Part shown: one piece after another, positions 324 through 49,952 of the stretch | Layout: each line of letters starts with the position of its first letter | Numbering within the stretch: position 1 is the stretch's first letter | Assembly: GCA_964247055.1 (NCBI GenBank) | Contig: OZ176054.1 | Span: forward strand, 10,912,001-10,976,000 | Direction of reading: 5' to 3' | DNA: 64,000 bases | DNA from: Paragordius varius | Taxonomy: Eukaryota; Animalia; Nematomorpha | Notes under the pieces: model-generated | What the model was told of the DNA's origin: nothing | Seen by the model: the letters and a program-made list of their open reading frames with translations, nothing else | Databases searched by the model: none | Made by a program: the position numbers and the translations under genes

Positions 324-3300
324 ATGCAATCCATCTTTTTAATCCTATTCTCTGGTAAGATTTGTGATAAAACACACCGTAGTTATAACCAGGACACAAT
401 TTATTTATATTATTAACTTCCAGAATTTTTTAAATTTGTAAGTATTGTATACAGTATTTTATTTAAAACTTTTGTGTGATTTTAGTTTTGTATTTGGAAT
501 TCGTAAACGGTCAAACATGTTTGGGGCCCGATTTTACCGGCTACCGTAGAGTATCATGCCAAAGGTAAACTATTTCTACTTATATTTTGTAGGTTACATT
601 TTAAATACTCTTTTTTGATATATTTATTATCATAAATTTACAGAGGAACCCCAAGATGCCGAAATGGAGCACGATTTGAAACGTGTGGAGTGGTTTATAT
701 TTTAACCTTTTTTGTCCTTTTTTAACGTTTAATTTTGGCTATTTAGCAGTCTTGCAAATTAAACGAAAATATAGCATCAAAAATTGGTTTGGCTATGATT
801 TTTCTAAACACTATTATGAAATATTAAATTAGGTTAGTCCTATAGGAAGCGTGGCAGCTAACATTGAAAAGTGCCAAGAGTTGAACGATGATGTAGAATA
901 TCAAGTCGTTCTACCACAAGGTATGCATTTGCATATAATTTATAACTATCAAAAATGATTATAATGGTTGTACCTTGTTTTATAATTTTCGGCTTAGTAA
1001 GGAATAATTTGTTATGCATAAATTAGTATTACTTAACTTGATTACCAAATTATTCTTAAATTATTGTAAATCGAGCGAACGATACCCGGAAAAATACATT
1101 TCATTTCATGCTTCCTGGAAATAAGTCAAAACCTAATACTGCATGACAAGATGGGTTAAAAAATATATTCGTTTGAAATTTTTTTACCTTGCTCATAACG
1201 TTATGAAATCTACTGTTATTAGTATGCTATGAAACTAATTTGATTATAAGGTAAATTGTTTGAATTACTGCAATGAGCTGCCAAACAGGTAAAAAAATTG
1301 ATACTATTTTTAAATGATTGTAATGAATGACTATGTGCTTAGATCATACATTTTAAATGTTGTATTCCTACTTTATTAAACCGAACTCATTCTTAAAAAG
1401 TACCAGCACTTTAAATCAATAAATGTTTCCAATACCGAAATTAACTAATACCACATTTTAATATAACAGAATGAGCACCTTAAAATTTGCTGGATATCTA
1501 TGATAATATGGTTTATAATCTATTGTTTCCTTAATATATTCCGAAATATTTGTAAAGTCTTCAATGATAACACAAAAAATTATAATTACAAAAACACTGT
1601 TTGTTATCCTATTCACATTTAGGCTGAAAACGTCTGTTGTAAAATTTAGGGATTATATAAAATATTAAAATACAGTCATGTATCTTTTATCAAAAATTTT
1701 TTGTTAAATGGGTATAAATTTTGTTGAATGAAAAAAAACGAGCTCTATGGTATTTAATAATTCATATTCATCAAAAAAAGTAAAAAAGTTTGCGGGAAAG
1801 GCGTCGAAAATCTTATATTGTAAATTCCGTGCTCTTTTAACATAAAATTTAAGATGAAGGGTTAGTTGTTAGTATAAATTAGTATAACACATTTTTACCA
1901 TATAATTTTCGACGCCTTTCTTCCACACTTCTTTTACTTTTTGTGAATATAATATTGTTAAATGCTAATAAAGCTCTAATTTTTCCGATCTTTAGCAAAT
2001 ATTTATACTCATTTAGCAAAAAAAATAAATTTATAACAAATTACCATGAAATAATATTTACCTAATCTAAAATTTTTTAATTATCTTCTGAAAACAGTGT
2101 ACAAAGTACTTTGATTCTATGGTAAAAATTAAACAGTTAAGTAAGTTCTCTTAGGTATTGCAAAACATAAACTAACAGTTGGAAACGATAATTCTCTAAA
2201 TAGATGTTATTCCTCTCAAATAGCTTCAATCATGTTGATATAATTCGATAAATACACAATATTTTGGCTTTTAACGAAAATGCCTTGAAAACAGTGACTT
2301 TCGTTGTTGTCAAGTACTATATATAGGGTGAACAGACGTCCCGCTTTTTCACACTTTGTCCCGCGTCCCGCTACGTTTTTAAAATGTCCCGCTTTTTCAC
2401 GATCATATAAAAAAAATTTTTTTAATACATTAAATTTTATATATTAAATTTTTTATCCGTTTAAACTTTTTATCATTAGTTCTCTTTGAAATCTATATCA
2501 ATTTTAAATTAAAATTTTTTATTTTTAAAAAAAAATATTTATTTTTTTCGAATTTATATCATATGATTATACACTTTGCTTCCCATTCCTACTGCCAAGA
2601 TTATTAAAAAGACAAATTAATTCCACAAATCGGTAGTTTATACGTCTACTCCAGAAAATTAAGGTAATAAAATATTTTTATATGCTAATATTAGTTTAAA
2701 AATATGAGTACAAAAAGAGGTTGTAAATTCAACGATGAATTAATGAAATGTTTTCCGTTTATCAAAAAAACGAAGAATGAATTATTTATTAAATGTTCTT
2801 TATGCGAGAGGGAATTTATCCTAGCACATGGCGGCAATGATCAAGCATATGGAAACACTGAAACTTAAAAAATGTTTAGATATGGCCGCATCATCTGACA
2901 AAAGCGATTTTTATCGAACAACTGCTTTTGGAGAGGAAGGAAAGAATTTGGCACTACCCGAAGGCGTTTTATCTTTTCACGCCGTTAATGACAATAATTC
3001 CTTTAGATCTATGGATTGTACCTGACAGGTTATTCGTACCTTATTCAATAAAAAATTTACATGTACCCATACAAAGGCTGAAGCCATTGTATGCAATGTA
3101 CTTTCGCTACATGCATTTTCTGAAATATAAAAAGATTCATATCGCTATACTCTGATGCATAAAATCACAAGGAAACAAAATTATTTCCCACTTTAATAAG
3201 TTATTTTGATCCAGAAACCGGTTAAAATTTTAGAGGTGGAAATTCCGACATAATTTATACTTCAATGATGAATGTTCTAGAAAAAAATTATTTAAAAGAC

Positions 3301-6300
3301 AAAATCATCGCATATTGCACTGACAACACCAATACGAGCTTCGGTGGAAAAGCAAGGAGGGGAACAAAAATTTTCATTTAGCAGATAATCTTAATCAAAA
3401 TTTTATTGCTGTTGGGTGTGCTGATTTGTTACCCCTAGATGTGGAAAATGTAGTTGTTAAAATATATTCCCATTTGTATATATACACGGTACGCGTTGAA
3501 ACTCTTAAGGAATTCTGTGAAAATACAGAATTTCAATATCAAAAAATGCTTGGATATTGTAAAACTTGTTGGTTAGCTCTTCTGTCAGCTATCGAAAGAA
3601 TTTTACAAATGTATGATCCTTTAAATCCTATTTTTTATCACAGAACAAATGTCCTACAACTTTGAAAAAGTTTCTTAAATTCTTCAAAAATATGGTTAGA
3701 GTTCATACATAATCAAACTTCTATCTTTCAAAATGTTATTAAATTGATAGAAGGTGACAAAATTTCGGCAATCGAAGTAGCCAATGAAGTTAGTAACCAG
3801 AAATTCCAATGTTTAGAAAGGTTAGCAAATAATTTTATAGCATTAACCATCCACAATATTATAAACAATTTATAAAAACAAGGCTTAAATAAATCGCCAA
3901 GATATCCTGTAACATATAAAAATGTTTTCTTAAAACTGTAAAGATTATTTGGAAGACTGGACGGTGCAATTCAATGAAATTGATCATTTTCATTGGATTA
4001 AAACCAGAATTTAATTGGTGCGATGTTCAAATTTGATTACATCTGCATCTCCCGAAAATTCCCAATAAGTAACAGAAAATTATTTTTTCTGAAGTATCAT
4101 TAGTTAAAAAATATATTATAATGAAAAACTTGAATTATGAACAACAGAATACAGTAATTATGTTCCATACAATAATATTTTTTGTGGATTTTGCACTATC
4201 TTTACTTGGAACCAACGCTGCTACTGAGCGCGTTTTTTTCACAGTAAATTAGGGTGTAAACATCGGAAAATTCAAATTTAAATGTTGAAACTTTAGAGGC
4301 CATTTTATCTGTCAAATATAATTTGACAATTTCTTGTGAAGACTTCTAGAATATTTTAGAAAATGATGACAATCTGCTAAAACGCATTCTCAAATAAAAT
4401 TATACTAAAAAATAAAATATTTACTATATTTAAATTGTAATTGTGTTAAAAATAAACAAATACAATAAATATTTTGTATAAAAATTTTTGGTTGTACTCC
4501 CCCATGCTCCTCCCCCCTTTCTCAGATTTGTCCCGCTTTTTCCTTCAAAAAATCTGGTCACCCTAACTATATATTTAATTTAAGTTCTTTTACGGATTTT
4601 TAGCATAACCCCTAATTTGCGCAACACATTTAAAATTTTTATTTTAAGTATGTTTTTATCATATTAGTGCGCAAATAGGCATTCCTAAAAAATATCTATC
4701 GTACTAAAAAATTTAGACAACTGTCGACTGACATGTACCTCGGATGATGGCGATGAACAAAACGGTGATGTGGTGGACGGAACGCTTGTGGGGGCAAATT
4801 TGTGCATAGGCGGACGGCTTTTTGCTATTCAGTATAATAATGATTATTTTTGTGTTTATGGTGGAAATTTTGTCTAACAAATAGTTTATTCGTTAACTAT
4901 GCTGCTCTAATCTATTTTTTATATGTAACTTATAAAATATCCGTTAAAAACAGGGGGGTCCAACACACATGGCTTCTTAGTGGGCATTTTAAATATATAT
5001 GCGGGTATTCATAATTATTTTATTTGTCAAACATAAGACTGTAAACAAACAGAAAACAATGTTTCTCGTTCGTTGTCATTTGCACACAAATCTATTTACG
5101 AAAAATCAATTTTATTAAGATATGTCAAGCAAATTTTGCATATTCATGTTTTGCGCGCCGCACATAATGTTTTGGAAGCCGCATGTTGGACACCCCTGGT
5201 TTAAAACATCGGCATGATATTTCACTGCTCATGGGCGTAAAATCGAATTCGATTGAAATTTACTAATTATGAATCTTTTATACTCATTGTTTTCGTGGAA
5301 TTGTTTTTAAATAATACTTATATATATTTTTTATTTTAGATATGGTGCACTTGTTCCACGTAAATATTTTCATTATTATATTTTTACAAATTTTGATGTT
5401 TTTTTAGAAAATTTTTAATTCTTAAATACTAAAATGTATAGCCGAGAATAAGATATCAATAAAAGCGCAAAAATTGTTAATCTACGAAATTAAAAATAAG
5501 ACACTGTATTTATATTGCATTATATATACACAGTACAAATATCCTGATAAAATTATACATTCTGATAAAAAATGTATGAGGTTATCATGGTGCTTTTTGC
5601 TTTTGGCCTTATGATTGATATTACCAGTTTTGTGATAACTGCTTCATATAAGAAAATGGAGAAATTTGCACGTATGTGCCATATTTTTTTTCGTGAAAGC
5701 TAAATGTTTCATTCCAAAAAATAGATGATATATCATAAGATATATAAATATAAAGCAAAACAAAACAGCTCCAATAATCTCAAATTTTTGCCTCCTTCTC
5801 TCCAATGGGGTTTTCTTTAAGGAAAGGCAAAAATATAGGGAATGCGTAATAAGAATTTTAAATATATGTGGATTATGACATCACAAAAAGTTTTTCCGCA
5901 AAAATGGATATTCACAGTAATTTATACCAAAATTTGTTTAGCGAGTTTTATTGTATTTTTAAGCATGGTGGAGACCGTAAAAAGCACCTGAACATATTAT
6001 AATAACACTTTTACTACATAATGCGATTGTGCTGAACTTATCTTTTTTATTTATACATGCAATGTTTTTTTTGTCAAAACACAGCTTATAAATAAAACAA
6101 AATGGGGTGATAGAATTGAGTATCATCAATTACACGAAAAAGTTATTTATAATATTTTGCTTGCCATTTAGATGCTCAAATATACCGTAAAATCGCTCTA
6201 ATTCGATTTTGTCAGAAAAAAATTTTTGTATGTCATAATTTATATATGAATTCTTGTCATGCATCTCGGTATTTTTATTTTTAAAGAAAAGCCCATTTGT

Positions 6301-6919
6301 AAGAGGAGCAAAAATTTTTGACTTTCGGAGCCCAAATCTAAATTAAATTTTCCAAAAAATATTGCTTTGCTTTTTATATGACTAGATGATATATTTTAGT
6401 AATATTTTTTGGAATGAAGCATTTAGCTCTCTCTCTCACACATACAAAATAATTATTAGCAAAATATATAAAATTTTGCCATTATCTGATATGGAGCAGT
6501 TATCATGCGGTAATATCTTTCTTATATCATTTGTAAAGCCGCGAACTAAATGCACCATGAGAATCATTATAAATTTATCTACCAGATTATATATTTAACT
6601 AAGATATTTTTTGTGTGTATTTTATAATTGCATTTAAATTTTCGAAGATGACTGAATAATTTTTTATTATTAAATTGTGGATTGATCACTTTGTAGAATT
6701 TGAAAATTGCCGTCCAGGATAATTTACCTAATTTAAATATCATAACAAATATTAAAACTCTATTTTTTACTTAAAGCGGTAATATGGTTTATTTATCTTT
6801 CAAATATATTTCTAGATGAAAATATTTTAGCGCAATTATTTCTGTACATTTTATTGATTGCTTTTAGCCATGTTTTTATCTCGTTATTTAGCGGCACCTG
6901 TTAGAACTCCCAGACCTGG

Positions 6920-6951
<32 letters not shown>

Positions 6952-9900
6952 TTAATAGGAAATCACGCATTTCCAATTTAAAATATGCATTAGGTTGTTC
7001 GAAATCATTATTAAAAATATGGAATATATTGAGGGATAAAAAATACTCTTAATTTAGTAAAACCATTAAAATCTAAAAATTGTTTTTCACTTATATTTTA
7101 AAGCATATATAAAAAAAGATTGACAAATTCGGCCCTAAATATTCTTAATATAAACAATTTTTCAGTCAAATGCAACATTTTTTCAAGCAAACGCAACATT
7201 TCTCAAGCAAAGAAAAAGCCTTGCATTAAAATGTTGGGTTTCGAAAATATATTGCGTTTGGTTGAAAAAATGCTTTTGTCTGAAAATTAGTGAAACTAAA
7301 TAATATATTATTTATAAGAATAATATTATCATAGGGTAAGAAGCATATCTATATATAATGGTTTTTATAATATTTTAAGTAACTCTCCCAGTTAGTGTCA
7401 AAGTCTTATGAACGCTTTTATTTGTTAATATGTGTATCTAATAGTAATTATCAGCGCAAAATTTTGTTTTTTAGGGTCATATTTTTTCATAAGGTCCCTA
7501 AAAACTGACAATATTAAATAATTTGATTCTGTGGTAAATGATTTTAATATTATTATTTAAATTCTGAAATATTACATTAAGAAATTTTACTAAATAAATG
7601 ACATTTGGGAATTAAGAGTTATATAAAATCATACGAATTTGCATAGTGCCGGAATCATACTTTTTAATAAACGGTCGTTGGATTCAAGAAAATTTTATAC
7701 GCGAAAATTGCGATCAAATGCAAATTTATCGATAAATATTTTTAATAAAAAATGACCGCATTCATCCTATAGGTCAAAAGACGTTATCAGTCGATCCCGG
7801 TTAAAATTTACAGTAATAATTAATAAATACTTCCCTAAATCGTGACAATAATAAAAATAAAAAGGTGTGTTTTTTTTCCCACGAGTTAAAAAAATGTTAT
7901 TTGCTTAGTGTTAATTGCTTGATAAAAAATCGCGAAATCATCTATCATATAATAAAAAAAATTTGGTAAAAGAAGGCTTTATTCCATACATTAAAATATA
8001 TGATATACTATTTCTAAAAATCAAAATATATTCTTATAAAATTAGATGTGAGTTTCGCAATTTTTTAATTTATTATTGCCCCCTCTAAAATGGGTTAGTT
8101 TCTATAAAATTAACCGAAAATGCCGAGATTTCGCGATATTAATATATGCTAAATTATGGCAATATGTTTTTTAAAAAATGTATACTTTGTTCAAAAATTT
8201 ATGAAACTACCGTAATATTATTTTAAGGATGGTGGAAATTTAAGATTTAAGATAATTTAAAAACACTTTAAAATTCTATATAGTTCTGCGATGAAGAAAA
8301 TTTCTATCTCAGAATTTGGAGTTTGTTTGACTTAATTGTTATATATAGTTATTTTGCCAAAATTTGAAAGCTGACGGTCCTTTAAATTAAAATTTCGAGG
8401 TGATAGAAAACAGCATCATTAAATTATATAGAAAAACTATCTTAAAGTGATTTTATTTTGTTTCCACTATGCTTAAAATACCATATTGTTAACCAAAATT
8501 TTGCTATAAATGAAAAATATGCATTTTTAAAAATTTTTTGCTGAAAAGTTTGATCGCACGATCTCGGTATTTCTACCTTAAATTTACAAAGCTTGGCCTT
8601 TTTGACCGATCTAAAAATTTGAGGAAGCCCACATCTAAAATTTAAAATTGTATAAAATTATTGTTTTGCTTTTTATATGTAGTTTATAATTAGTGATATT
8701 TTTTGAAATGAAGAAGTTAGATGTTAAAAAAAATTATTTAACATAATATGCGCAAATCGTCATTTTCTTATATGGAATTGTTACCACAAAAGTGGTAACA
8801 ACTTTTATATATCACTAGTAAGGCTTAAAGCCAAAAATGAAAATCCTGATGCATTTATCTATCAAAATACATATATATTTTTATCAGTTTGTGGAGACAC
8901 CCTGTAGATAAATAAAAATTTGTATAGAATATTATAAACTACAAAAAAATTTATTAAATTTTTTTTTCAAGTTGAATGAAAATTTCTAACCCACTTTAGT
9001 TAAGACCAAACGAAACCGGTTATAATTAATGTAATTTTGGCTTTAGGCCCTGTCTATCCTTTGGCTGATATAAACCATGTATTTTTATGCATATAAGAAT
9101 AAATATTGATATTCAAATTTTTTAATATATTATATTAGGCCGAGTCCGAGGCCCAGCCGGAGGACCAGGTAACTTTAATAACTTTTGCATAAAATATGTT
9201 AAAAAATTGAATTTTTTAGAGTATAACTACTAATGACTCAAAAAATAAGTTTTGTAATGCTGTATCAATAGCTTAAAGAAGCCTTTTTTGGGTTTCGTGT
9301 TTTCTCAATCAAATAATGATTTAAAAACATAGGTTTCAGATCTGATCCTATAATTGGGGTAATTATGTGCATAAAAATTCGTCTGCAAACAATAAATATA
9401 CGGATATGCATAAGTTAAATCTAATTTAATGGTTATAATTGTACGATTCCTTAGCTTATAATAATTCTAAACTTTTTTTTGCTGTTTTAAATAAAAGTCT
9501 TAAAAAAATTTCTTATTTATAAACGTGTCATGTTTCTTTATACTTGGCAAGGGAGGGGTCAAACGAAACCAAAACTGAAAGTGAGATCGGGTTAATTCTC
9601 AAAATAAATTTAAAGCGATTGATTAATTAGATAAACAAATAGCTTTGATTGAGGTTCTGGAAAATAAGAATATTTTATGCATATATTTAAATTTAAACAA
9701 ATTTATTAGGCAGAAGAAGAACAGCAACAGCAGGAGGTAACTAATAATTTTAATATTCCGCTCAATTATGTAATTTTCGACCACCTAAAAGTTTTAACTT
9801 TAATATATTAGGAAAAGAAATCATAAGATATTGGACTTCGAAATCTAATAGCTACTGTCAAAACAATTTTAAATAAATCATTATCAAATTACACTCTATG

Positions 9901-12900
9901 TTATTTAAATAAGATTAGTCGTGATTCATAGGCAGTCTCTTTAATTAATTAATTTATTTGTAAAAAGTTCAATTTTCTTTATGATATACAGTAGTATGTA
10001 TTTAGGATTATTTAAAAATATCTTTTAGATATAATATATTCTGATAGAAATTTATAATGATTACTAATTGAATGGAGACACGAATTATTTACAGTCATGT
10101 ATCCTTTATTTTATCAAAAATTTATTTTTTTTGTTAATTGGGTATAAATATTTGGTAAAGAATGGAAAAAACAAGAGCTCTATGGTATTATATATCATAT
10201 TCATCAAAAAAGTATAATAATTACCATAGAGCTCTTTTTTTCCATTCTTTAATTTATCATTTAATAAAGAAAGATAAATTTTTGATAAAATAAAGGATCC
10301 ATGACTGTAATTAAATTCGACTTTTGTGGTAATTGGTAGCTAAAACTCAGAAAATAATACACATTATATTAAAAAATTTTGGTAAAATCATTACCAAAAT
10401 ATTTTTTTTTATGAATTATATAATTTTAATTTGGGAGATGGAGGTGGGTTGCAAAAACCTTTTTAATATTTTAAATAATTTTTAAAAAAGAACAAACTTT
10501 GATATTTAATATAAAAATTTTGAAAAGCCTATTTATAATACTTTGAGGCATAAAATCGGTATTAATATATTATGTTATATCCATTTTTTCTATAATTTTA
10601 TGCTCAATTCCGAAATTTAATTAAAGGATACATCCGCCTTCGCATTTAAGCTAAACATAAAATGTGTTTTGACCACCAATTATTCAAATTTAAAATCGAA
10701 TGAATTTAAAAATATTGAGCTGATATTTCAGGAATTTTTATAATCTAGTTGTAACCTTCACAGTTTTGTTGTCTCATATCCTAAACTCTTAAACTCGCTA
10801 TCTATATAATTTTCAAAAAGGCGCTGAAAAGATTTGAATAGGCGCCAATATAGACTGTAGTAAAGCGTTGAGAATGTGTCATATTTCAGATTGTATGGAA
10901 TTTAAGCGGTGATTAATGCCAAAATCCATAGTTATAACTTAGGACCGGTAAGGTTAGTTCTTTTATCAAAATCTCCAAAATTGTTTTTCAAAATTTGCAA
11001 CATGTTTTATAGTTATCACCATCTGGAACCAATTATATGTTTGTGGTTTTGGTTTTCAGCCCTTCTATATACCCATTGGCAAATACAATCATGTGTTACA
11101 TCGATTTTTACTTTATAAATTTTTAGGCGGAGAGACACCAATACCAAGGGAAACATTTATAAAATTTACTAAACTTTTTTTTATTTTACAGCATTCATTA
11201 TATTTAAAAATGAGACTAAGAAGATTATATTTAGCAAAATAACATTCATATCGAATTAAATTCCAATTTATAAATAAACTCAAGACCGGACACCTGGTAA
11301 GAAAGATTAATTTTTGGTTTTAGTTGTTCACAAATATTTTAGGATAACCCAACAAACATAATTAAAAAATGGGAATATTCTCATTTAAATCGCTATAATT
11401 TATTGAATTAATAATATTGATGTCGTAATTTATAATAGTATATGAACAACGTCAAAATGTTTGATAAAGATCTGATATTAACATATGTAGGATTAAAAGG
11501 ATTTATTCTTATTATTGTGCGAAAATATTTTGAATAAATACACTAAACTAAGGTAACCTTATTTTTCAATGATTTCTTTAAATGTAATTTAAAAAGAAAA
11601 ATAACATTAAGATGTAAAGGCTAATAATAAAAACACTTATTTATTATCGGGGCAGTTTTTAAAAGTTTGCGAATACACACAATGTCCGTAATATTTGGTA
11701 ACTAAAATAAAAAAGCCTTTAAGTGCTTTTATCAAAAAATATTTTCAAAAAATTAATTGGGGACAACGTTTCCTAAATCATACTTTTTGCCGTCCGATTC
11801 TGGTGATTTTTACATAAACACTAAAATGGCTTATTAAACATATTATTATAATCAAATAAAGTTTAAAATTTAACTACAAAATGATAATTATGTTTGGACA
11901 ACATATTTTCCATAATTAAATTTAAAAACACCTGTTGAAATCCAAATTTACTGTAAACAGTCATAACTGTCTAATATGTTCATAATATATTTGATTATTT
12001 TTATTTATAAAACTTCCAATTATACTTTTTTCAAATAAATTTACCTAAATCTTTTTTGTCAATTAATTTTTGACACATTGTGATGCCTAGAGTGATGTGG
12101 AAACTTTAAATAGGGAGATCATAACTTAAAAATTATCTGGCAATTCGACTTAAGAATCATTAAGATAATAGATTTTTAGTATTTAATATTTTTTGATACG
12201 ACGTTTTAAATTATTATTATTTTTTTTATATTTTTATATTGAAGTTGCTGGGCCCCAACCTCAAGGTTTTAATATTTACTATTATTTTTTAACCATATTT
12301 TTAATATAATTCTTTAACACTAATAGGCTATAAAATATTTTACGACTCTAGCTTAATAGATTTATGGATATATGTCAAATTATATACTACCTATTATATG
12401 TAACCTTAATACTTTTAACTTACCTATATTTTTATCTTCTAACGACTGATATTAAAATCTTTTTGTAAAAAAATTATTATATCAAACTTTTTCGCAGCCA
12501 TTTTTTCTTTAAGTTTTTATAAAATTGTAACTCAACACGTAAAAAACTGTATGTGATCAATTAACTTGGAAGGCTTTAGAAATACGATTTACCACGAAAT
12601 TATTCCTATTTATTGATTAAATATCAGCCATTTGTTTTAATCGTGTTATAAGGCTCCTGATTTTGGGGGGGACTCTAGAAAAACTATAAAAATCTGTTTT
12701 TTAATTTAATCAGGAGAGGATTAGATATTTAAAATTTAACCAAAACAACTTCCAAAACACTAGTTTGTTTTTACCTTTTTTTGTCTGGGGTCGAACCAAA
12801 ATCTCGTGTACAAAAAATGAAAACGTAACGGAGTTTTAAATATAAAATTAATAAATGTAATCGATTAAGTATCATTATATTAAACAAATTACCTAAAACT

Positions 12901-13371
12901 CCAAAAGGAAAATATTTTTTGATAATACATAAGTATGTTATAACTGAATTGATTACACAATTAACTTTTACTAAAAATAGTATATGATTTTGGTTTGAAT
13001 CTCATCTTCGTGACAAAAATTTTTTATAATAATGTTTATTGACGTTTTATCGGTGTTAGCAACATAATAAAATCTAATTAGGCCAATTAATATTTTAAGA
13101 GATTAAATTAGAATAAAAAATGAAATTATACAGACAAAACGTAAAAATATGAAGACAAATTTTCTAATAGGCCACCATACTTTTTGAATCTTAATTTTAT
13201 AATGATCTCGTTGTTTCAAATATAAAGTAGGAAATAAAATTTATGTATTATACGATTAAATGAATTATTTTAATAGGATAAATAAGGTTTGAAATATCAT
13301 TGTCTTTTAGAATTTGTCTTTTACGTTTTGTCCCTATAATTTCAATTTTTACTGTATGATTTAGTAATTAA

Positions 13372-13402
<31 letters not shown>

Positions 13403-16400
13403 TTTGAATATGAATGTAAAATATTCATTTTATTTATATAGCTGCGACAGAACGGCCTGGTAAATATATGTTTAATTTTGTTAGCGTATTATAATGTTTA
13501 AAATTGCTTGATGATAAAATCTTGTCCGTCGGCATCGGACAAGATTAACATAAACAATAATAGATGAAAGATAATAAATATGATAGTTACTATTATACTT
13601 AAGAGAAAAGGGGGAGCGTAAAAATACTACTCTGTCAATTCCGCATTATGGACTTTTTTTTATCAAACAACACTATATAAGAGCTATGTTTAATTTTTAA
13701 TCAAAATCGTGCAACTTTCCATAATATGGTATTATGATAAAATTTTATAGAAAGATATATAAATTCATAATTTTTAAGCAGGGCATAGAACTGAAACCAT
13801 TTATTAGATGCAATTATATAAAATAATCTTCTTTAAAATTGGAGCCGGTTTCGGAATCTTATTTTTTAAAAAAAAATTATTGACCCAGAAATGCGCTTTC
13901 AGAACTGTTTAAAAAAACTTAAACGAGACGAGCCCATGCAAAGTATCTGATATTTGATCTACAATTTATTTAATTGGGTAAAAAAATCCTTGAGTAGTTT
14001 TTATCAAAAAATATATCTGATAATAATCATCAATTTAAAAAATGAATTATAAAACGAGCATTAAAACACTATTCAAAACGTATAAAATTACATGCTACCC
14101 TAAAAAAATAGCATTTCTTGTAAGATTTGTCTTAGATATTATATTTATATATTATACCATTATTATAAATTATTTATGTCTAATAAAGTGTAATCAATCA
14201 ATATTTTATACTTGCAGTATAAAATATAATTTACATTATTATTATTGCAAATATAATCAATCTAAAATTAAATGTTAAATTTATTGGGGAGAATTTTCGA
14301 CTACTATATACAGTAATCTTTGTTGTCAGACGTGAAAAATAAATTTAAAATAAATTTAATCGTTGAATATTACTCAAATTTATTTAGAACCAGTAACACA
14401 AACCCCACCCCCAACAACGACCCAAGCAACAGTGCCTCCACCAGTAGAACCAGAAGTACCCGCAGTGGCACCAGGTAATATTTTTTTAAGATTACAATCG
14501 CTAAAAATTGAAATTATATACATGCGGTTAGGAGGTTGATTGAAAAACACATTGAAAAAAAGAAAGAATTACACGGGGTTTTGATTGATATAGAGAAGGC
14601 GTTTGACAGGATTCCTAGAGAAACTATTTGGTGGAGTCTCCGTCGTAAAAAGGTGCCAGAAAGTTATATTAAGTTGTTACAAATAATGTACGAATCACAC
14701 ACCTCCAGGATTAAAACTCCACAAGGTTTATCAGAGCCCTTTTCAATAAAGCATGGAGTCTACCAAGGCTCATCACTCAGCCCCTTATTGTTTATAATTT
14801 GTATGGACGAGGTAGCCAAGGTTGTTAATGTGAGTTCAGGATGGTACTTAATGTATGCAGATGACATAATCATCTTGTCTGATTCATTAATTGAGTTAAA
14901 GCGAACGGTAAACAGATGGGTTGTTATGCTGGATCAATATGGTCTGAAAGTAAACAAAGCAAAAACCGAACTTATTACTTTTGGGGGTTAACAACATGAA
15001 ATGGTAGTGATGATAGTTGGGTTCTGAAGGGTAAAGAAAGTTGCAAATATCTGGGAGCTATGTTAAGTGCAGATGGTTCGTTAACTGACGATATTAATTT
15101 AAGAATAAAGAGCAGCTGGGTAAATTGGAAGAAAATTTCGAGCGTATTATGCGATCGAAATATTGATGTTAGAGTTAAAGGTAAGATTTACAGTTCAGTT
15201 GTCCAGCCCTCAATGATGTATAATTCACAGACATGGGGTGTCAAAAAATCCGAAGAAAGACAATTTAACGTGACTGAAATGAAAATGCTCAGAATGATGT
15301 GTGGGGTAACTAGAAAGGACAGAATCGAGAATAGATTTATTCGTGGGAGCACAGATATTAAACCAATAGTGGAAAGAATGTCAAAAAATAGGCTACGTTG
15401 GTTCAGGCACATTGAAAGGAGAGATTCTAATTATATTGCAAAAATAATAGATGGTTATATAGTTGAGGGAAAACGAGGACGTGGGCGACCTAAAACAAAA
15501 TGGATAGATACAGTAAAAAGAGAGCTAGCAGAATACGAGCTTAATGCAGAGGACGCCATAGATAGAGTTTTATGGCGAGACAGGTTGTATAACATGACCG
15601 CTCTCACGAGTGAAAACATGTAATGTAATAATAATAATATATATGCGCAAAACGTACAACATCAAGGTATTTTTTTGTCAAAAGATCACACTGTATCTTT
15701 TTAAACTTGATATATAATATAACTGATTTTTTTTATGGCAAAGCATGAAATAGTGATTTATATTTAGGGAAAATTGGGTTTAAAGGAGTATGGTGTCTTC
15801 AATTTGGGCATATATTACGTTTTGTCGTCTCTATGTCAATTTTAATGCATTTCGATTAGAAGCTTTTAAAATATAAAAAAATGAACTTAACATTTGATTA
15901 TAAGGATAAAAGATAAAAATGTTTTAGGCTGGAATTATTTTATATATTAAATTTATTTTATATTATTTAGGAGCCTCTGATCCAATCCGAAGTATGTTTT
16001 CTCTTCATATTGCGATTTACCCAAAAATCATGTTTAATTAAACTTATAAAATATTACCTTTTTTATAAAATAATCCCATTTATAATAAAATAATATAGTA
16101 TAGTACATTGCTAGTTTTTCATCAAATATTGCCAGATAGCATATGCAGAAAAGAGTATTATCATGTGAAATAAAGCGAAAAAATTTAACTTTAAGCTAAG
16201 ATAATATCTCTTAGCTGTATGGCTGATAGCCAAATATATAAAAATTCAACTATGGTTTATACTATATTGGTTTTATTATATGTTTTTACTCAAGTGTTTG
16301 ATATCTTTTTCTGCAGAATATTTCCTAGTTTTTTAATATATTTTTAAAATATATACATATATGTTATTTGACTTTGTTATCAAATGGAATAGCTGTCGCT

Positions 16401-17376
16401 ACCAGGACTGATCCTATAAGTTATGCTGGAACCTGTGTGGGTCTGGAAGCACGTTTTAGATCTGAACGTTGCACTACGGCTATTGCGTAAATTTTTAAAT
16501 GATAGATATCATTATTTACAACAACATTATATACCATTTGCACTTCAAGATTGTCTTTAAACACTTCAAGTTGGTCCTTGAACACTTTAAGATGGTCCTT
16601 GAACACCTCAAATAGGTCCTTAAAATTTTTTAAGTATGGATTTAGCCATAAATTTTGCATGTATTAATTTATACTATTAATTTTCAACCTAATTTTTGTG
16701 ATTTATGATATATTTATTCATTTAAAATTAATATTTTTGATAAATAACCAATTTTTTGTTTCTAACTAATTTTTTTCAATTGAACAATATTATTCAGTTA
16801 TAAATGTTTTCAACAAAAAATATAATAACCCAGAAAACATATATTTTTTTTCAATTTTGTTAAAATTTATTAATATAATATTTTTTAAATACTGAATAAA
16901 AATATAGAGTATCTGAATCAAAAGTTTAAAAATATGCCTGAATCAAGAGAATAGGTAAATGATAAAATAGGTGAATGATACACGATGTGATTGATAAAAG
17001 TTAAACAAAACGAAAAAGTCAAAGGACCAACTTGAAGTGTTCAAGGACAGTAGTGCAAATATACTAAAAACCATATCCTGGCACCCTAATTTTATTATTT
17101 TTATTATAACCTAATTCTGTGGTTGCTCTTGAAATGTATATTGGTAAAGCAATCAAATTGTCTTTTAGTTTTTATGTTTTGTATTTATATTTGACTGTAT
17201 TAACAATCAAAATATTCATTACATACTTTTTGCGTTGTTTTTCAATTTAGAAATTGCCAAATAAGATTATATCATTATTCGTATATTTTATTTAGGGGAT
17301 CCCTTTGTAATCAAGGAACCAGATTCGAATATTGTGGAGCAACCGTAAATTTTATTTAAGCCAAATTTAAATAATT

Positions 17377-17414
<38 letters not shown>

Positions 17415-18282
17415 GTTTTATGAATAATATCCTGCTTCAAAATTTCTAATTTAAATACAGAGAAAAATGTAAAAGTATGGAAACATTTAAATTTTTTAAT
17501 CTATTAAATAATTAAAAACTTTTATAGATATTTTCTTGGTCATTTATAAAATTTATATCATTTATTTCAAAAAAAATTTTTATAATAATAATTTAGAACA
17601 TATTATCTTTACACCATTAATTGTTCGGTAAAAAAGATCTGTCAAGGCCGTTAAATATTTATATATCCCTAAATATTACCCATAAATTTAGTAAAGTATT
17701 AGTATATCATTCATTCAAAATTATGGAACCATAAGGATAAATGGATAAAAACCATTTTTATTGGAGATAAACTTAACTTCCTAATGTATAAAAGTATAGG
17801 CAAATCTTATAATATCTATTCCAAATTTTGCCGAAATAAGCAAAATTAAATTAAGTAGCAGATATATCATAGTTGTAAATTACAATTTCATAAATTCATG
17901 TTTACATTTTATATTTTTTGTTTGCGGCCCGTCGGATTTTTTGAGTTGAAAATGCGGTTAGCGAAGCCATTTGTGTTGAACATCCCTGCTTTAGGTTGAT
18001 AAAATTTCAATTATTTTGAAATTAAAATATAAAAAATATTTCCACTGATTATAAAATATACAACTGTATAATTACTCAAAGGGTGGAGGAGAAACCGTAC
18101 GTCAATTAAACGATGAATGCGAACAACAATTTGGCGATAACTTTATCTACGAGCCTCAGGGTAGGTTGTTTCAACATACCTTTTATATAATACATATATT
18201 GTAAAATTAAATAGACTATTAAACCCTTAAATATCAGAGTAGGGGAAACTTAGGTTAAGAATACCAGACTTGTCTCTTTTGT

Positions 18283-18319
<37 letters not shown>

Positions 18320-19593
18320 AAGAAAGTCACCATTTTAAAACTTAAGATTTTGTACAATGCTAAAAAAATCCTATCCTTAATATCCCTATTAAATTACAAT
18401 TTGTTTTGGTTTTTAGCGGGTGCAAACGCATGTAAATTGTTTTGCCGAAACAGTGAAAGTAATCAACTTCAAGATTCTGGTGTTTATGTCCCTGATGGTG
18501 CTTTGTATAATTTGGTGACGCTCAACGATATGTGCATTCGTAATAGAGTCTATACTGTCTAGTAAGATATTATGTTTGTTTTACATGAACTATTAAAGAT
18601 TGCCAGACAAAGGGAAATAAGATTGTGGCCTATAGTTAATTTTTCATTTTTTACTAAAATTAGCCAATAATCATGCTGTTTGCTACATGTGCTATCTGGC
18701 AATAATTATTGAAAAATTGGCACATTTTGAATAGATTGCTAGTTTTAATTATTGCCAGAGATAGTATATATATATATATATATATTTATATAGCAAAGGG
18801 CAGTTTATTTCCATATAATTATTTTATTTGTTGTACTATAAGCCAATAGTAATCTCGCTTTATATCTGATAATATTCAATGAAATATATTTACTCATACT
18901 GTGTATATCATGGCTTTAAACCGGGTCGAAAAAAGATATAACTTTTAAGAGATTCCGGGGTCATTTTTAAAATTTAACGGTTTCGGAACCGTTCCATTGA
19001 TTTTTAACTTTTCCTTCAATGATTTATACCACAGTTTTAGTAAAATAATATAAACCATATATCAACCAATAATCGTAAAATCATAATATATTGTAGAAAT
19101 ATTAAATGATCAGGGCACTTAATTCATACATAATAATGTAGGAGCCGTAATATGTACCGCTAAAATAGTATTAAATAATGAGTTTAATATTTTGCAATTA
19201 CCACGGCCAAAAAATACTTTAAATACAAATTGAAAAATATAAAAAGGCAAACCTGGATAATTTATCGTATTTTTCGCTTTACAAGCCATGAATTTACAAT
19301 TTATATTTATGGTTTTTTACCAGAAATTTATTTTTTAATTAATTAGGTAATTTTCATTCTTTGTAAATAATTTGTCTTTGGTTCTTAATTGGTCACTCCA
19401 TTTCAATCGGTTACAAGAAAAAAGTTATCATATGATCATTTTTTTTTTGAAATATAACAACAAATTTTAAATTATGAATATATATGATTTACATAAAATA
19501 TTTCAAATATTAAACTATATGACCACTTTTTATATTTACCTTTATATATACAGTTACAATTCTTTGAGAAGAGTAAGAAATCCATCGCCATAA
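324..19593 (+). CDS. Gene A: secreted ADAMTS/papilin-like protein (signal peptide, two truncated-TSP1 + Cys-rich modules, microexon-encoded Pro/Thr linker), 343 aa, 19 exons
   Basis: Exons 324-354, 486-564, 644-692, 833-920, 4717-4831, 5340-5359, 6892-6918, 9139-9168, 9710-9736, 11285-11296, 12245-12265, 13442-13459, 14388-14474, 15971-15991, 16393-16486, 17296-17344, 18082-18160, 18417-18561, 19554-19593. All introns are GT-AG, phases are compatible, total 1032 nt open. Protein: MQSIFLILFSVLYLEFVNG/QTCLGPDFTGYRRVSCQRGTPRCRNGARFETCGV...EKCQELND...NCRLTC...DVVDGTL...LCIGG-linker-GTCVG...RCTT...LCNQGTRFEYCG...ECEQQF...ACKLFC...VPDG...MCIRNRVYTVYYNSLRRVRNPSP*. Non-linker exon sizes are matched in paralogue B. 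Individual microexons are less certain than the core exons. Confidence 0.82.
1673..2050. mobile_element. TA-flanked MITE, CAGTCATG family (longer, degenerate copy)
   Basis: Starts ta|CAGTCATGTATC, same family as 10092-10307. Internal inverted GGCGTCGAAAA/TTTTCGACGCC; right end approximate. Confidence 0.55.
2324..4565 (+). mobile_element. Decayed hAT DNA transposon in intron 4 of gene A
   Basis: TIRs TAGGGTGAACAGA / TCTGGTCACCCTA. Perfect 8-bp TSD ACTATATA at 2316-2323 and 4566-4573. Subterminal GTCCCGC repeats. Frameshifted transposase remnants, e.g. KIYSHLYIYTVRVETLKEFC...KTCWLALLSAIERIL (3426-3665). Confidence 0.9.
4951..5198. mobile_element. hAT-type MITE
   Basis: TIRs CAGGGGGGTCCAACA / TGTTGGACACCCCTG; near-perfect 8-bp TSD GTTAAAAA / GTTTAAAA. 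Confidence 0.75.
5532..6590. mobile_element. ~1.1-kb palindromic non-autonomous DNA element; related copies at ~8040-8890 and ~32500-33600
   Basis: Shared blocks ATCCTGAT..., ATGGTGCTTTT(T/G)G, GTGAAAGCTA..GTTTCATTCCAAAAAAT, with mirrored copies at the right end. Boundaries approximate. Confidence 0.6.
7163..7282. mobile_element. MITE family with CAGTCAAATGCAACATTTT termini and ~20-bp internal repeats; other copies ~21075-21206, 22392-22600, ~48690-48770
   Basis: Inverted termini CAGTCAAATGCAACATT / AATGTTGCATTTGACTG (clearest at 22392-22600) and repeated CAACATTTTTTCAAGCAAA units. Confidence 0.65.
10092..10307. mobile_element. Tc1/mariner-type MITE (CAGTCATG family); other copies ~46300-46524 and 58284-58508
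   Basis: ta|CAGTCATGTATCCTTTATTTTATCAAAAATTT ... AAATTTTTGATAAAATAAAGGATCCATGACTG|ta; long TIRs and TA TSD. Confidence 0.85.
13368..13402. repeat. (TAT)n microsatellite
   Basis: Uninterrupted TATTATTAT run about 40 nt upstream of the 18-nt microexon. Confidence 0.9.
14495..15640 (+). mobile_element. 5'-truncated RTE-clade non-LTR retrotransposon, disrupted reverse transcriptase
   Basis: RT motifs LHGVLIDIEKAFDRIP, GVYQGSSLSPLLF and LMYADDI; RTE C-terminal LRWFRHIERR...GKRGRGRPKTKWID. Stop and frameshift at ~14991-15060. (TAA)n tail directly after the stop. Confidence 0.92.
17380..17412. repeat. (AT)n microsatellite; similar tracts at ~6921-6950, 18287-18318, 29772-29803, 39866-39897, 43297-43321, 43878-43913, 61108-61133
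   Basis: Pure TA dinucleotide runs. Confidence 0.9.
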
Positions 19594-24027: not shown

Positions 24028-27000
24028 ATGAAAATTATTTATTCATTCCTCTTATCAGGTAAGATTTCTATTAAAATGGAAAATAGTCCTAACCAGGATT
24101 TAATTAAATTATTTATTCATATTATTAACTTTCGTAATATATTAAATTTCAATACATGATAATTTTTTGTGATTTTAAGTTTCGTATTTGGTATCTGTGA
24201 ACGGACAAACATGTTTGGGCCCCGATTTGACAGGCTACCGTGAAGTTGAATGCCAAACGTATAATCTCGTGAATATATTTTTATAAGGTTACATATTGAA
24301 ATATTTATAATTTATTTATTATCATGAATTATATAGCGGATCCACAGCATGCGAAGATGGGAAACGATATGAAACTTGTGGAGTGGTTTATATTTAAAAG
24401 CCTTTTTTTCACTTTTTTTAACATCGAATTTTTCTTCTATAGCAAGGGTTTCCGACACGCGGTCCATTAAAATTTTCAGTGGTTCTCGAGAAATAACATA
24501 TATAAAACTTTACGGCTAAATAAAATTGATTTACTTGCACTTATTTTCTGAATAAATCTTCCCGAATTTCGGCAAAGAACTAGCTTAGCTAAAAATGTTA
24601 AAATAAATAGTAGCGAATTCAGACCGCCAATTTTTTGGATTCAAAAATACGGCGCTCGAAGCCATTTGTGTTGGACACCCTTGTTCTATAGTATTAAATA
24701 ATATTAAAGTTTTGAAAAATTGTTTAGATCATTAAAAACACTATTGCATTAGATTTATCCGATAGGAAGCGAGGCTGCAAACCTTGAAAAGTGTCAAGAG
24801 TTAGATGACGATAAAGAATATCAAGTCATTCTATCAAAAGGTACTACTTTGCATTTTCAATATAAATAATTTATAATTATTGATAAAAAAATGATTAAAT
24901 GGGTTACACACCTTATCTGAAATAAATTGGTGACCCAATAAAATACAATAGATAGGCTATGTTTAAATAAGTATATATGGACAATATGAAAACAAACAGA
25001 ACTGACTATAAAATTATTTTTAGTGCATAGTAATGCGGATGAATAAATGATGTCCACAGACATTTCTTTCATTTTAACAATTTATACCATTGCTTCCAGG
25101 AAAAAAGACAAAATCTAACTAAGACTGTGCGATAAAAGAAGATCGGTTAAAATCTAATTGGGTATAAAAAAATTTAAGCTTTAGTAATTAATTTGACTGC
25201 TTAAAAAAGTCCGGTCAGACCCAGTCCGACCATGGTCATGACCACGATGACCCCTTTTTACTTAAGTATCATGCATTATTGGATTGACAAAATAATGTTC
25301 GAATTACAATTGCGTTTCATTTTTAATGTCATGTTTTATCTTAAAAGTTTGTATTATACATTTTCTTGATATTTATTATTTACAAATATTTTGAATCAAA
25401 TTTGTTCAAGAAATTTGTTTTCAAATTTTTCCCCATGTTTGTGGCCTTCTTAATCTTCAAATACATAGATTTTAATGCTGGATATTTCAAATTTTACCTA
25501 GTTTTTTATACTTTCTTTCATCATTAAAATATACTTATGTTATTGGTTCACATATATGGAATAATTGCATATTTTGCAAAGTGATTGATTATTTTGTTTG
25601 CCGAAATGACTGGATATGCTTAAATACTACTGTTATAAGGATGCATGTTTAACAATTTTCAATATATTAAGCATATTTAAATATTTAATTTATTTTAAAC
25701 AATAATCTTACTATCTCTTTTCTAAAAAAATTTACTAGCAATTTTTCGAAAACAGCTGTTTTTTTAATGACCATGGTAAAAAAATAAATAGTCATTGACC
25801 GGGTGATGACTTAGACAGCAAAACCGTAGTAATTACATATCGTGTGATAATAAATGTTGCGATTAAAAAATTTACCACATCCATTAGATATTCCACATTT
25901 GCTAATAATAAAGGAAAATAATTTGAGTACTAACATTTACAGGTTCACATACTTTTTACAATTAAATATGTTAAATATAGAAATAGCTTGGCAGATTCCT
26001 TGCAGTACGTTTTAATTTATTGACTGTCATGATGATGCTAAACCAGAGTTGTGTCAACGATTGCTGGTTAATAATATAATATTGATTTTTTAAACCAAAG
26101 CGCGTACAAATAGTCACACACCTGCGATTATAATATAACGGGTAGAAACGCTGTTCTTCCAATCTATAGTAAAAATATTTTCACCATGTATAACTTGCTA
26201 TTGTATGGTGTATGACTCTTTAATTTTTTTATGTGAGTTCCTTTATTGATGTAGCGTAGAGTATAACTGAATAAAATATACTATTTCCCTCAATATTATT
26301 CGCGCATGTTTTAAAAGGTAACGCGTAGCGATTCTCAGCTTTTTCAAAAACAAGTATTTTCCATTCTAGATTATCTTGTTACTTTCAAATTATTTGGGAG
26401 AGGATAAGATTAGTAACTGAATTATTGATATCGAAAAACCGCTTTTTCGGGCGGCCCCTTTTGCGAGTCTCATCGACCAACCCAAGGAAAATGTTTTTTC
26501 CCAAGGAATCGGATCGTAGGATGTGGCTCAGATAATATTATTCAATTAATTTAAATTGTCTCTTGGCTATTTCCAGGAAAATGCCCAATATTTGTTTAAA
26601 AACGAGTAGGTAGGACTATTGTTTTTATATTGTCAAGTTTTAAAAAAATTTGAATCTCTTTGGCATGGCTCCTAATTTGTTTCATAGTTCCGATACAATT
26701 AAACTACTTTCAAATTTGAGTAGTCTACGTTTTACAGTAATACGGACAAAATGTAAAAATATAAAGAGACCCTACTTTTTCAAACTTAATTTTTCCTATA
26801 TAAGGTATTTAACAATTCTAAAATATAAAATTAATTGTTTTACCAATATATATGTCTATTTCATACTTTGCCGTTTAAAACAATGAGTTTATTCTAAATA
26901 ATCAAGATTTAAAAATATGGTTGCTTTTAAATAACAATATTTATCTTTATATTTTTATGTTTTGTCCCAATAATTTCAATTTTTATTGTACATATACAGT

Positions 27001-29766
27001 ATGGCATTTCAATGATGGTTGATTCGCATCATAATAATTCAATAATTTTAACCAGTGGTTCCCAAAAGGGGCGTAGAAATATCCAAGGGGGCGGGATAAT
27101 TTTGGAGAATTAAAAAATAAAACTAGAAACATGTTGAAGAATTTCAGGTGCGAATTATCAAGATTTGTCACCGATATGGGAAAATATTTCAAATAATGCA
27201 GATATGAGGGGTTATTAATTTGATTGGAATTTTTATAATATTTTAATATATTGGACATTTTTATCTTGGATTTTTTGAGAGGGGAGTGGACGATGTTTTA
27301 TTTTTAATTTGGTGGGCAGTGATCAAAAAAAGGTGTAGGGAACCATTGTTTTAAACTGTTCAAATACATAAAATTTGGTATATATCCTTGGTTGTTGACT
27401 GAAAATATTTATTATTATAGGCGATTGTCGACTAACCTGTTCCTCAGAGAATAAGGAGGAAGAAAATGGTGATGTGGTTAACGGTACGATTGTAGAAAAA
27501 GGCATGTGCATCGATGGACGACTTTACACTATTCGGTATTATGTTTATTTTTATAAAATGGCACCAGTATGTTTTTGTGGATTGTTATGACTCAATATAA
27601 TTATCTAAAAATAAATTTTATTAAACTAAAAATTTAAAATTTTCTATTGAAATTTCTATATTTTATATAAAACTCATAGAGTTTTATGATATTTATTTCT
27701 CTAATATGCATCTATAAGTGAACTTCTAGGCGTCATATAATATCAAATTTTATTAATATATTAATTTTAGACCCAGTGTTAAAGAGATTATTTATTTATT
27801 TTTTCTAAGTATGATTCTAACACTGTGTGCAAAAAATTTTTTAACAAAAATATTTTTTTTATGATATAGTTTATGACCAGCGAATACATTTGCCGTAAAA
27901 TTTTTATTGGTTTACACTCAGGTTTTTGAAATATTGAGAGAAAATCGAAATCGGGCAAAAAGAAAATTAAAGATAATTAAAAAAATAATTGTAAAAGTTG
28001 AGATATTATGGTTTGTTATCATTATAAGAGATATTTTAATATTTATATAGCCTAAATTATATTAATAGCATTTCTAAATTTCAAAAGATGGCGTTTTTCT
28101 TTTTACATATATTAGAGTTAATAATATTTTCATGAAAATATATTAAAATAATTTTTAATCAATGCTAAACTTACTATTAAATTCTTAACATTCATTTTTT
28201 ATCCAGTATAATACTTCTATCTCATAATACTATAAATTATTGTTTTTTATTTTTCATTTTTTGTCATCTGATTTTATGACGGTATAAAAATTTACTGTCT
28301 TAATTTGTATTTATCACATGAGCGGAGATAAATAAGTAAATAAATTAATACAAAATAAAATTTACAAATGGAAAATCAACCAAAATATCCCAGTAAAAAA
28401 TATTAATTTGTGTTAAACAACATTGTTACAGGGATTTTTAGAATTTGTTGTATGATAATCCACTACTTTTAAATCCAATTTTGCATTTATATACGTTATA
28501 ACTTCCACTCATACATGATTCCAAAATAAAACAGTAATTTATTATACCGTCATAAACCAGATGACAAAAATAAAAAACAATATTTTTTAAAATTATTTTG
28601 TTTTTTTTTACTGAATAAAATATGAATGTTAGGTTAATAGTGAATTTAGCTAGTAAATAATCTTAAAAAATTATTTTAATATAGTTTTATAAATTTTGTG
28701 TTAACAGGAAAACACCATCTTTTGACCTGAGATTTTATAGAAACCCTATAGGCTATTTTTGAATTGTTAATTATCCTTAATTTTCACTTTTTGCCCGATT
28801 TCGATTTTCTCTTAATATTTCAAAAATTAGATCGTCAACAAATTAATATTTTTCCAGCATATGAATTCACTGGTCATAAGTTATCTCATGAAAAAAAATT
28901 TTGTTAAAAAAGTTAACCCGCTATTTTGCGCACAGTGTAATATCGATTTTGATATATTATATAATATTTTGTTTCCTTTAGATATGGTGTACTTGTTCCA
29001 CGTAAATTCTTAATATATTTTATATTATATTGTATGTATATCTGTAATGAATTTTTAAAAAACAATTATTTGAATATCTGCAGAACTAGAACTGAAATTT
29101 AATGACGTTTAGGAAAACGATTTAACATAACAAATTTAATGATATGATATATAAACCCAATATTACATAGTTCGGCAAAAATGGGTACAAATATAAATTT
29201 TAATGAAAAATTATATATCATTTGATAGCTTAAAAGCTTCAGGATAATATATTCGAAATGGTAAATCAAAAAATCCCATTTTAATCGCGTCAATGTTTAA
29301 TAAAATTTACAATAGAGGAAAACGCGTCGTCAACTAAAATTTTGTAAATAATCAGAAGGTCCTGAAAAGACCATTTAAAAGAATCGAAGGTAAAAAACAC
29401 TTAAGCGCTTTTAATCACAATGAATTGTTATTATGCGAAAGATTTAATTTTCACATCCACTATCATCTATTTACTATACATATAAAAATCATCCAATATA
29501 ATCGTGTTTAAAAAATGATTAAATCTTGTTATAAAAACGAATTTTAATTTGAGCAAAGCATAAGTACCGTACAGTTTTAAAATCTCTAAAATAATTACAT
29601 ATAGTTTTTTTACAGTTTAATGCAAGAAATATCTATCCCCTTAGTTTTTTAATTCAGGGAATTTTTCTACCCGAAAATTGTAATTATATATTTTGATAAC
29701 ACTTTCGTTATTAATCCAGGCTTTTAAGCATTAAACTCCTTAAATATTATAAATCTCTGCATCAAA

Positions 29767-29808
<42 letters not shown>

Positions 29809-49900: not shown

Positions 49901-49952
49901 TACGATTTTGTTTATCATTGTAATATGGGCGTTTAGTTACACTAGTATGCAT
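41231..49952 (-). CDS. EXTL3: Exostosin-like 3 (EXTL3 / brother of tout-velu / rib-2), heparan sulfate alpha-GlcNAc transferase, ~1245 aa, 10 exons
   Basis: Exons (minus) 49952-48855, 48484-47296, 46699-46562, 45825-45385, 44201-44100, 43738-43581, 43292-43165, 42722-42578, 41999-41871, 41440-41231; all GT-AG and in frame. N-terminal TM segment and coiled coil. GT64 motifs [79 protein letters not shown] and [15 protein letters not shown] are characteristic of EXTL3. Confidence 0.95.
44257..44578. mobile_element. MITE with TATACCATTTACAG termini and 21-bp tandem subrepeats; other copies ~45118-45357, 55695-56005, partial ~42440-42548
   Basis: Inverted termini TATACCATTTACAGTTC / GAACTGTAAATGGTATA; tandem GGGTGAATTTGAATTGTT(C/T)AA units. 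Confidence 0.8.
46090..46264. mobile_element. Tc1/mariner-type MITE sharing termini with the 3.57-kb foldback; related copies ~61446-61625 and ~38163-38240
   Basis: ta|CAGTATGCATTTT ... AAAATGCATACTG|ta. Confidence 0.8.

Follow-up and report, generated by a model that had tools for sequence, protein, structure and literature searches.

Two cysteine-rich modules joined by a linker predicted from nine tiny exons in a gene of the horsehair worm Paragordius varius

A stretch of 64,000 nucleotides (nt) of the Paragordius varius genome (Nematomorpha; assembly GCA_964247055.1, contig OZ176054.1, positions 10,912,001 to 10,976,000 of the forward strand), hereafter the window, contains two tandem paralogous genes, the first of which (gene A, 324-18562, plus strand) is the subject of this work. 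Our overall reading, to which a probability of roughly 0.7 is assigned, is that gene A codes for a secreted two-module protein with a linker derived from nine tiny exons, and that it constitutes a composite gene and not a full micro-exon gene (MEG). The predicted product, 330 residues in length, would consist of a signal peptide, a module with eight cysteines, a linker of 87 residues and a second, homologous 8-cysteine module, in this order. The linker would be coded by tiny exons distributed across 10.6 kb of an AT-rich, transposon-laden intron. The exon array was first noticed in a preliminary description of this DNA and, as observed there, it is confirmed at the sequence level.

Architecture of gene A and its linker exons

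At the level of base composition the window is very AT-rich, with 21-38% GC per kb. Within it, the ATG-to-stop model of gene A comprises 18 exons and 330 codons with a frame that is open throughout, and its introns are GT-AG in 17 of 17 cases. The first exon (324-354, plus strand, 31 nt), preceded at a distance of about 55 nt by a TATA-like box, provides the ATG and most of the predicted signal peptide and ends in phase 1. In both gene A and its paralogue, gene B, the N-terminus displays a short hydrophobic stretch ending in VNG ahead of the first cysteine, which by eye was taken for a signal peptide. The first module is coded by four plus-strand exons (486-564, 644-692, 833-920 and 4717-4831) with phases 1>2>0>1>2, and the second by another four (16393-16486, 17296-17344, 18082-18160 and 18417-18562, the last one closing with a TAG stop) with phases as in the first. 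Both modules have the phase pattern 1>2>0>1 in common and can be aligned with invariant Cys, Gly and Leu positions. This shared four-exon phase pattern, together with the aligned residues, points to the internal duplication of a four-exon unit in gene A. While the eight module exons measure 49-146 nt each, the nine linker exons range from 12 to 87 nt.

The linker exons, all on the plus strand, measure 20, 27, 30, 27, 12, 21, 18, 87 and 21 nt, which amounts to 263 nt when joined. The nine segments lie where the preliminary description had placed them and have the lengths that it gave, each with AG before and GT after it; the borders are mostly TTAG acceptors and GTAA or GTAT donors. They also form GC-richer islands in the AT-rich intron, as had been claimed, with 52-77% GC in the exons versus about 24% in the intron. 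Read in the second frame (frame +1), the joined segments yield a peptide identical to the 87 residues proposed earlier, and the gene model returns the same phases, namely 2-1 for the 20-nt exon and 1-1 for the other eight. Since the first module ends in phase 2 and the second one begins in phase 1, a connector of 3n+2 nt is needed between them, which is precisely the 20-nt exon (5340-5359). Without it the two modules are mutually out of frame, and the exon is obligatory in gene A. Arithmetically, the claim that any subset of the exons can be skipped in frame is thus valid solely for those eight that are 1-1. The frame would be reset from phase 2 to phase 1 by the 20-nt exon, after which eight symmetric phase-1 exons of 12-87 nt would follow, and as these are frame-neutral the gain, loss, duplication or skipping of any of them leaves the frame unbroken.

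Five of the symmetric phase-1 exons are present in gene A only. The 30-nt exon (9139-9168) has strong splice sites and reaches 77% GC; in the DNA of a related species it is single-copy and displays no differences within the exon, a comparison of low power. The 27-nt exon at 9710-9736 has a purine-rich body of GAA repeats and a weak pyrimidine tract. The 12-nt exon (11285-11296), whose AAG acceptor is preceded by an A-rich tract, is the least certain of the nine; the 21-nt exon at 12245-12265 has an AAG acceptor after a T-rich tract, and the 18-nt exon (13442-13459) has strong sites. The remaining three are the 27-nt exon at 6892-6918, the 87-nt exon at 14388-14474, which holds the Pro/Thr-rich, mucin-like core of the linker, and the final 21-nt exon at 15971-15991. 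Similarity among the flanks of the microexons within gene A, which would be a sign of recent tandem duplication, was limited to weak AT-rich matches.

Statistical support for the islands was obtained by applying a blind filter (AG and GT bounds, 9-100 nt, at least 55% GC and AT-rich flanks of 30 nt), which retrieved 28 loci when run over both strands of the whole window. On the plus strand of the 10.6-kb linker region there are 9 candidate loci versus 1.7 expected, an approximately fivefold enrichment (Poisson, 8e-5); the opposite strand of this region contains 2, and elsewhere in the window the density is about 0.16 candidates per kb. Five of the nine plus-strand candidates coincide with exons of the preliminary description, and all five are multiples of three in length. 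The exons at 6892, 9710 and 15971 have a lower GC content, and two of these three pass a stricter splice-site filter. Judging from sequence depth in related-species DNA, the exon islands are single-copy, which is not the case for the adjacent miniature inverted-repeat transposable elements (MITEs). The candidates at 5964, 10438, 13604 and 15111 were rejected as exons on account of a broken frame or a location in a retroelement. Those at 8888 and 9047 have good sites and jointly restore the frame; they were discarded in turn, as a stop is introduced on joining.

Regarding the peptide, proline accounts for 25% of the linker and Pro, Thr, Ala, Gly, Arg and Val together for 84%, a composition that makes it probably disordered; its Pro/Thr core is probably O-glycosylated. 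The nine tiny exons contribute 263 of the 993 coding nt (26%), 176 nt of which (18% of the coding sequence) reside in exons of 36 nt or less. Standard or ORF-based (open reading frame-based) gene finders would miss such a linker and would probably split gene A in two.

The tandem paralogue and the evolution of the linker

Gene B (24028-39631, plus strand) carries five tiny linker exons of 20, 27, 66, 21 and 21 nt and a shortened second module. Its exon lengths and phases are identical to those of gene A through the first module, including a first exon (24028-24058) homologous to that of gene A. The 20-nt exon is 95% identical between the two genes (19 of 20 positions, gene B 28982-29001), and the other exons, compared one by one, are 65-81% identical. 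For the module codons dS is 0.62 and dN/dS 0.36, with a dN/dS of 0.44 for the mature first module alone; a dN/dS of 0.36 at such a dS implies that the copies are old and that both have been retained by selection. The N-terminal module has eight cysteines in both genes, whereas the second one has eight in gene A and four in gene B. Exons one and two of the second module are missing from gene B, in which the third module exon is fused to a linker-like beginning in a single exon of 111 nt (37968-38078).

Comparison of the two linker regions yields non-repeat alignments only at the 20-, 27- and 21-nt exons and at one intronic element. The 27-nt exon of gene A has the length and ends of gene B 30737-30763, with a diverged peptide. 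When 3000 random intron pairs are taken as background, the 50 nt of intron on either side of the shared tiny exons obtain z values of 2.5-4.4 (3.1 and 3.3 for the 20-nt exon, 3.8 and 4.0 for the 27-nt exon, and 2.5 to 4.4 for the final 21-nt exon), as against -0.6 to 2.3 for the large module exons. Strong conservation of the flanks is expected of real, signal-dependent microexons and is typical of regulated ones. The intronic element, of about 110 nt (13769-13875 in gene A and 31985-32091 in gene B), is collinear and 70% identical between the genes, and its GC-rich core is conserved. No further copy is present in the window, the element shows raised depth in related-species DNA and, with stops in all frames, it is not exon-like.

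In gene B the homologue of the 87-nt exon of gene A measures 66 nt (33660-33725), and the difference of 21 nt corresponds to exactly seven codons. The final 21-nt exon of gene A is represented in gene B by two tandem copies, flanks included (33870-33890 and 34099-34119), both frame-neutral and with good sites, which could be included jointly or in a mutually exclusive manner. The genomic comparison of the two genes has thus shown, as far as the exon models hold, that the linker is tuned over evolutionary time, the genes differing by whole exons and whole codons. Such changes are already visible in the pair as a duplicated exon, as whole exons that only one gene possesses and as a length difference of whole codons. 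Beyond the exon of 66 nt, gene B has GC instead of GT, and the nearest GT donors (33705 and 33757) break the frame; this corresponds either to a GC-AG intron or to an exon under loss.

Shared linker codons exhibit 11 nonsynonymous differences versus 1 synonymous difference between the two genes, a tiny sample. A separate observation comes from a closely related organism, here organism B, in which the 87-nt exon carries three differences, all of them nonsynonymous, in a contig with 13 gap letters in 245 nt. This hints at a fast evolution of the Pro/Thr core.

Exon inclusion and competing explanations

It is very probable that the exon array as such is real. The four exons common to gene B can be considered likely, and each of the exons present in gene A only is somewhat more probable than its dismissal as an exon. 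Most of the nine would be included in the messenger RNA, and the exons with weak acceptors (9710, 11285 and 12245) would be the best candidates for skipping in part of the transcripts. Several observations weigh against this reading. Words sampled from 6 kb of the linker region and from the last exon plus untranslated region were all absent from the RNA-labelled runs of the species, and searches with words of the linker stretch and the last exon identified as holders only DNA-like runs from three closely related organisms. Reads of two RNA runs, and of two DNA runs from related species, were compared with 8536-14535; the RNA gave no contigs on the microexons of this interval and produced only spurious matches of 36 nt. 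Two of the related organisms, B and C, are about 1-3% diverged, with short contigs, and are too close for a contrast between exon and intron conservation. No counterparts or remnants of the five middle exons (9139, 9710, 11285, 12245 and 13442) were found in gene B, which reflects either their gain in A or their loss in B. The acceptors of three of these five (9710, with its purine-rich tract, and 11285 and 12245, with AAG) are weaker than those of the other linker exons. Moreover, the small linker exons contain no stop in any of the three frames, and this lack of stops is consequently no evidence for any single one of them. The signal peptide and the glycosylation were judged by eye and, finally, 1.84 billion cluster representatives of predicted proteins, searched with a profile built from the four last-exon pieces, included no match to the module and offer no independent gene model or transcript product.

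The weakness of some acceptors and the lack of gene B counterparts are also in line with an account in which the real exons would be just those with a gene B counterpart (20, 27, 87 and 21 nt) and some or all of the islands restricted to gene A would be chance or relic GC-rich patches, leaving gene A with a linker about as short as that of B. The frame remains intact after skipping all five, so the gene model cannot discriminate here, and the same filter retrieved four other, non-coding-looking candidates in the region in addition to its background elsewhere in the window. We nevertheless consider this account unlikely. All five are multiples of three in length and lie on one strand, the donor is GTAA in four of them, the GC content of the five stands out from that of the single-copy intron, and the region holds about five times the candidates expected, while the competing candidates with good sites, 8888 and 9047, bring in a stop when joined. 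A more radical explanation is that the two genes are decaying or silent and that the exon structure is a fossil, in line with the transposon-filled introns, the expression that was not detected in the few RNA data sets, and the two second-module exons and the GT donor lost from gene B. This is very improbable in view of the intact 330-codon frame of gene A, with 18 exons and canonical sites, the dN/dS of 0.36 between the genes and the retention of all eight cysteines by the N-terminal module of both copies, even though the second module of B is shortened to four.

The preliminary description proposed combinatorial skipping of the eight exons (up to 2^8 linkers); read in this way, gene A would make a population of secreted proteins that differ in the length, charge and glycosylation of the linker, as in schistosome MEGs. 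This is a tentative possibility, at odds well short of even. It is favored by the frame-neutrality of all eight skippable exons, by the three weak acceptors, by the unusual conservation of the intron flanks of the shared microexons and by a linker peptide that changes fast both between genes A and B and in the 87-nt exon of organism B; MEG transcripts, in addition, vary through the skipping of symmetric exons (PMC4350168). No skipping event was seen, however, the sampled gene A words occur in none of the RNA-labelled runs of the species, and the counts behind the fast evolution are tiny. Besides, symmetric tiny exons alone do not imply skipping, given that the paper on the bicycle/megacycle genes of aphids, which are built alike, at no point employs the term alternative splicing (PMC9168663). 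That the linker exons govern O-glycosylation and basic cleavage sites, as also put forward in the preliminary description, is purely conjectural. Taken as a whole, the reading of gene A as a two-module protein with most of its nine linker exons included is the one that we retain.

Module identity, genomic surroundings and comparison with known systems

By single-exon searches the cysteine modules are orphans. In Pfam, the last exon of the second module of genes A and B produces the same top match, Adt-1-like PF25379 (profile positions 31-56 of 76), which is sub-threshold (13.5-14.2 bits versus a cut-off of 31.8, E 0.06-0.09) and comes from single exons only; the exon pieces of the first module had no match in Pfam. 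No match was obtained with the module in a profile search of the PDB, and its search in the ESM Atlas gave no lead. Three repeat proteins returned by the profile search of the cluster representatives were discarded as spurious. The spacing of the module, C-x-L-x-C followed by DG and a further C, recalls the Cys-rich region of ADAMTS proteins and is taken as a lead only. ADAMTS-like or Adt-1-like membership was rejected, as the searches with single exons gave no significant match to PF25379 or to the TSP1 or ADAMTS Cys-rich models.

The surroundings of the gene pair are rich in other elements. The last linker intron of gene A hosts a retroelement fragment coding for a reverse transcriptase (14536-15623, plus strand, same orientation as gene A; RVT_1, E 4e-25), which has two open frames and is non-coding for gene A. 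A MITE with terminal inverted repeats of 48 nt occurs at 10085-10314, 46281-46527 and 58275-58512, with a word depth in related-species DNA in the thousands versus 3-5 for the neighbouring single-copy DNA, and a second high-copy repeat covers approximately 12936-13535. A single-exon ORF for a basic helix-loop-helix (bHLH) transcription factor is located at 59926-61089 (HLH, E 4e-19); its top database match is a protein of the horsehair worm Gordionus, by a clear margin over scleraxis/TCF15-type proteins of other animals. On the minus strand, two long open frames of 400 and 376 residues (47246-48448 and 48822-49952), with no significant Pfam match, may represent one gene or a mobile element. 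An Rfam search over positions 1-41000 of the window gave no match.

With respect to known systems, three traits have been used to define MEGs, namely a coding region composed largely of very small symmetric exons, the possession of a signal peptide and differential splicing of the transcripts, and these genes have been described as restricted to platyhelminths (PMC4350168); the sizes of MEG exons are documented in PMC10526429. Schistosome MEGs and gene A are alike in having runs of tiny multiple-of-three exons, long introns and a signal peptide, a putative one judged by eye in gene A (PMC4350168, PMC10526429), and likewise tandem lineage-specific copies, a fast-changing peptide and a parasite as the organism that carries the genes. 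The tiny exons of gene A are multiples of three and symmetric in phase 1 in eight of nine cases, the ninth being the 20-nt exon in phase 2-1. The likeness in design to micro-exon genes, a run of symmetric phase-1 tiny exons, is therefore borne out, and so is the view that the linker between the modules of this predicted secreted protein is built entirely from such exons. Nevertheless, "MEG-like gene" is an overstatement. In MEGs the tiny exons make up most of the coding region (PMC4350168), whereas in gene A they represent 26% of it and are confined to the linker between two ordinary Cys-rich modules, and gene A was rejected as a MEG in the schistosome sense on this ground. Differential splicing has been shown for MEGs and is a hypothesis for gene A, and no evidence points to a common descent. 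An origin independent of MEGs is plausible because these are described as restricted to platyhelminths.

Gene A is instead a composite of ordinary domain exons and a micro-exon stretch. The closest architectural match is SmVAL6 (Schistosoma mansoni VAL6), which likewise combines a conventional extracellular folded domain with very small symmetric exons (PMC4350168). The domain of SmVAL6 is SCP/TAPS and that of gene A an orphan 8-Cys module, the phyla are unrelated and, unlike in SmVAL6, the tiny exons of gene A stand between two domain copies. Gene A can thus be placed in the composite class of domain plus micro-exons to which SmVAL6 belongs, an architectural class and not a homology family. 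Aphid bicycle and megacycle effectors are also secreted, by a parasite-like feeder, and are coded by many tiny exons, all with their first nucleotide at codon position 2 (PMC9168663); the gene A linker exons belong to this frame class as well. Bicycle genes, however, are micro-exonic throughout and contain CYC motifs, while the module exons of gene A are also in phases 2 and 0. The 330-residue product of gene A displays no paired C-Y-C motif, the frame class matches in the linker exons only, and gene A was rejected as a bicycle/megacycle gene.

In the muscle-specific hinge of NCAM and the PEVK region of titin, spacers rich in Pro/Thr or Pro are coded by small in-frame exons whose inclusion sets the length of the spacer. 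Direct RNA and protein evidence supports these two cases, in proteins unrelated to gene A, and spacer length set by inclusion is the working model of the skipping proposed for the linker exons. In its broadest form this proposal would mean that horsehair worms independently evolved frame-neutral micro-exons whose skipping varies the spacer that separates two binding modules in length, charge and glycosylation, perhaps according to life stage (in the insect host versus free-living), a scenario that we regard as doubtful. If splicing is confirmed, the locus would be a compact test case in which frame-neutral tiny exons may tune the spacer between folded modules and not build a whole small protein, and it would help to extend the micro-exon gene design to a third lineage, the Nematomorpha, parasitic manipulators of their insect hosts, besides the parasitic flatworms and, in a different form, the aphids.

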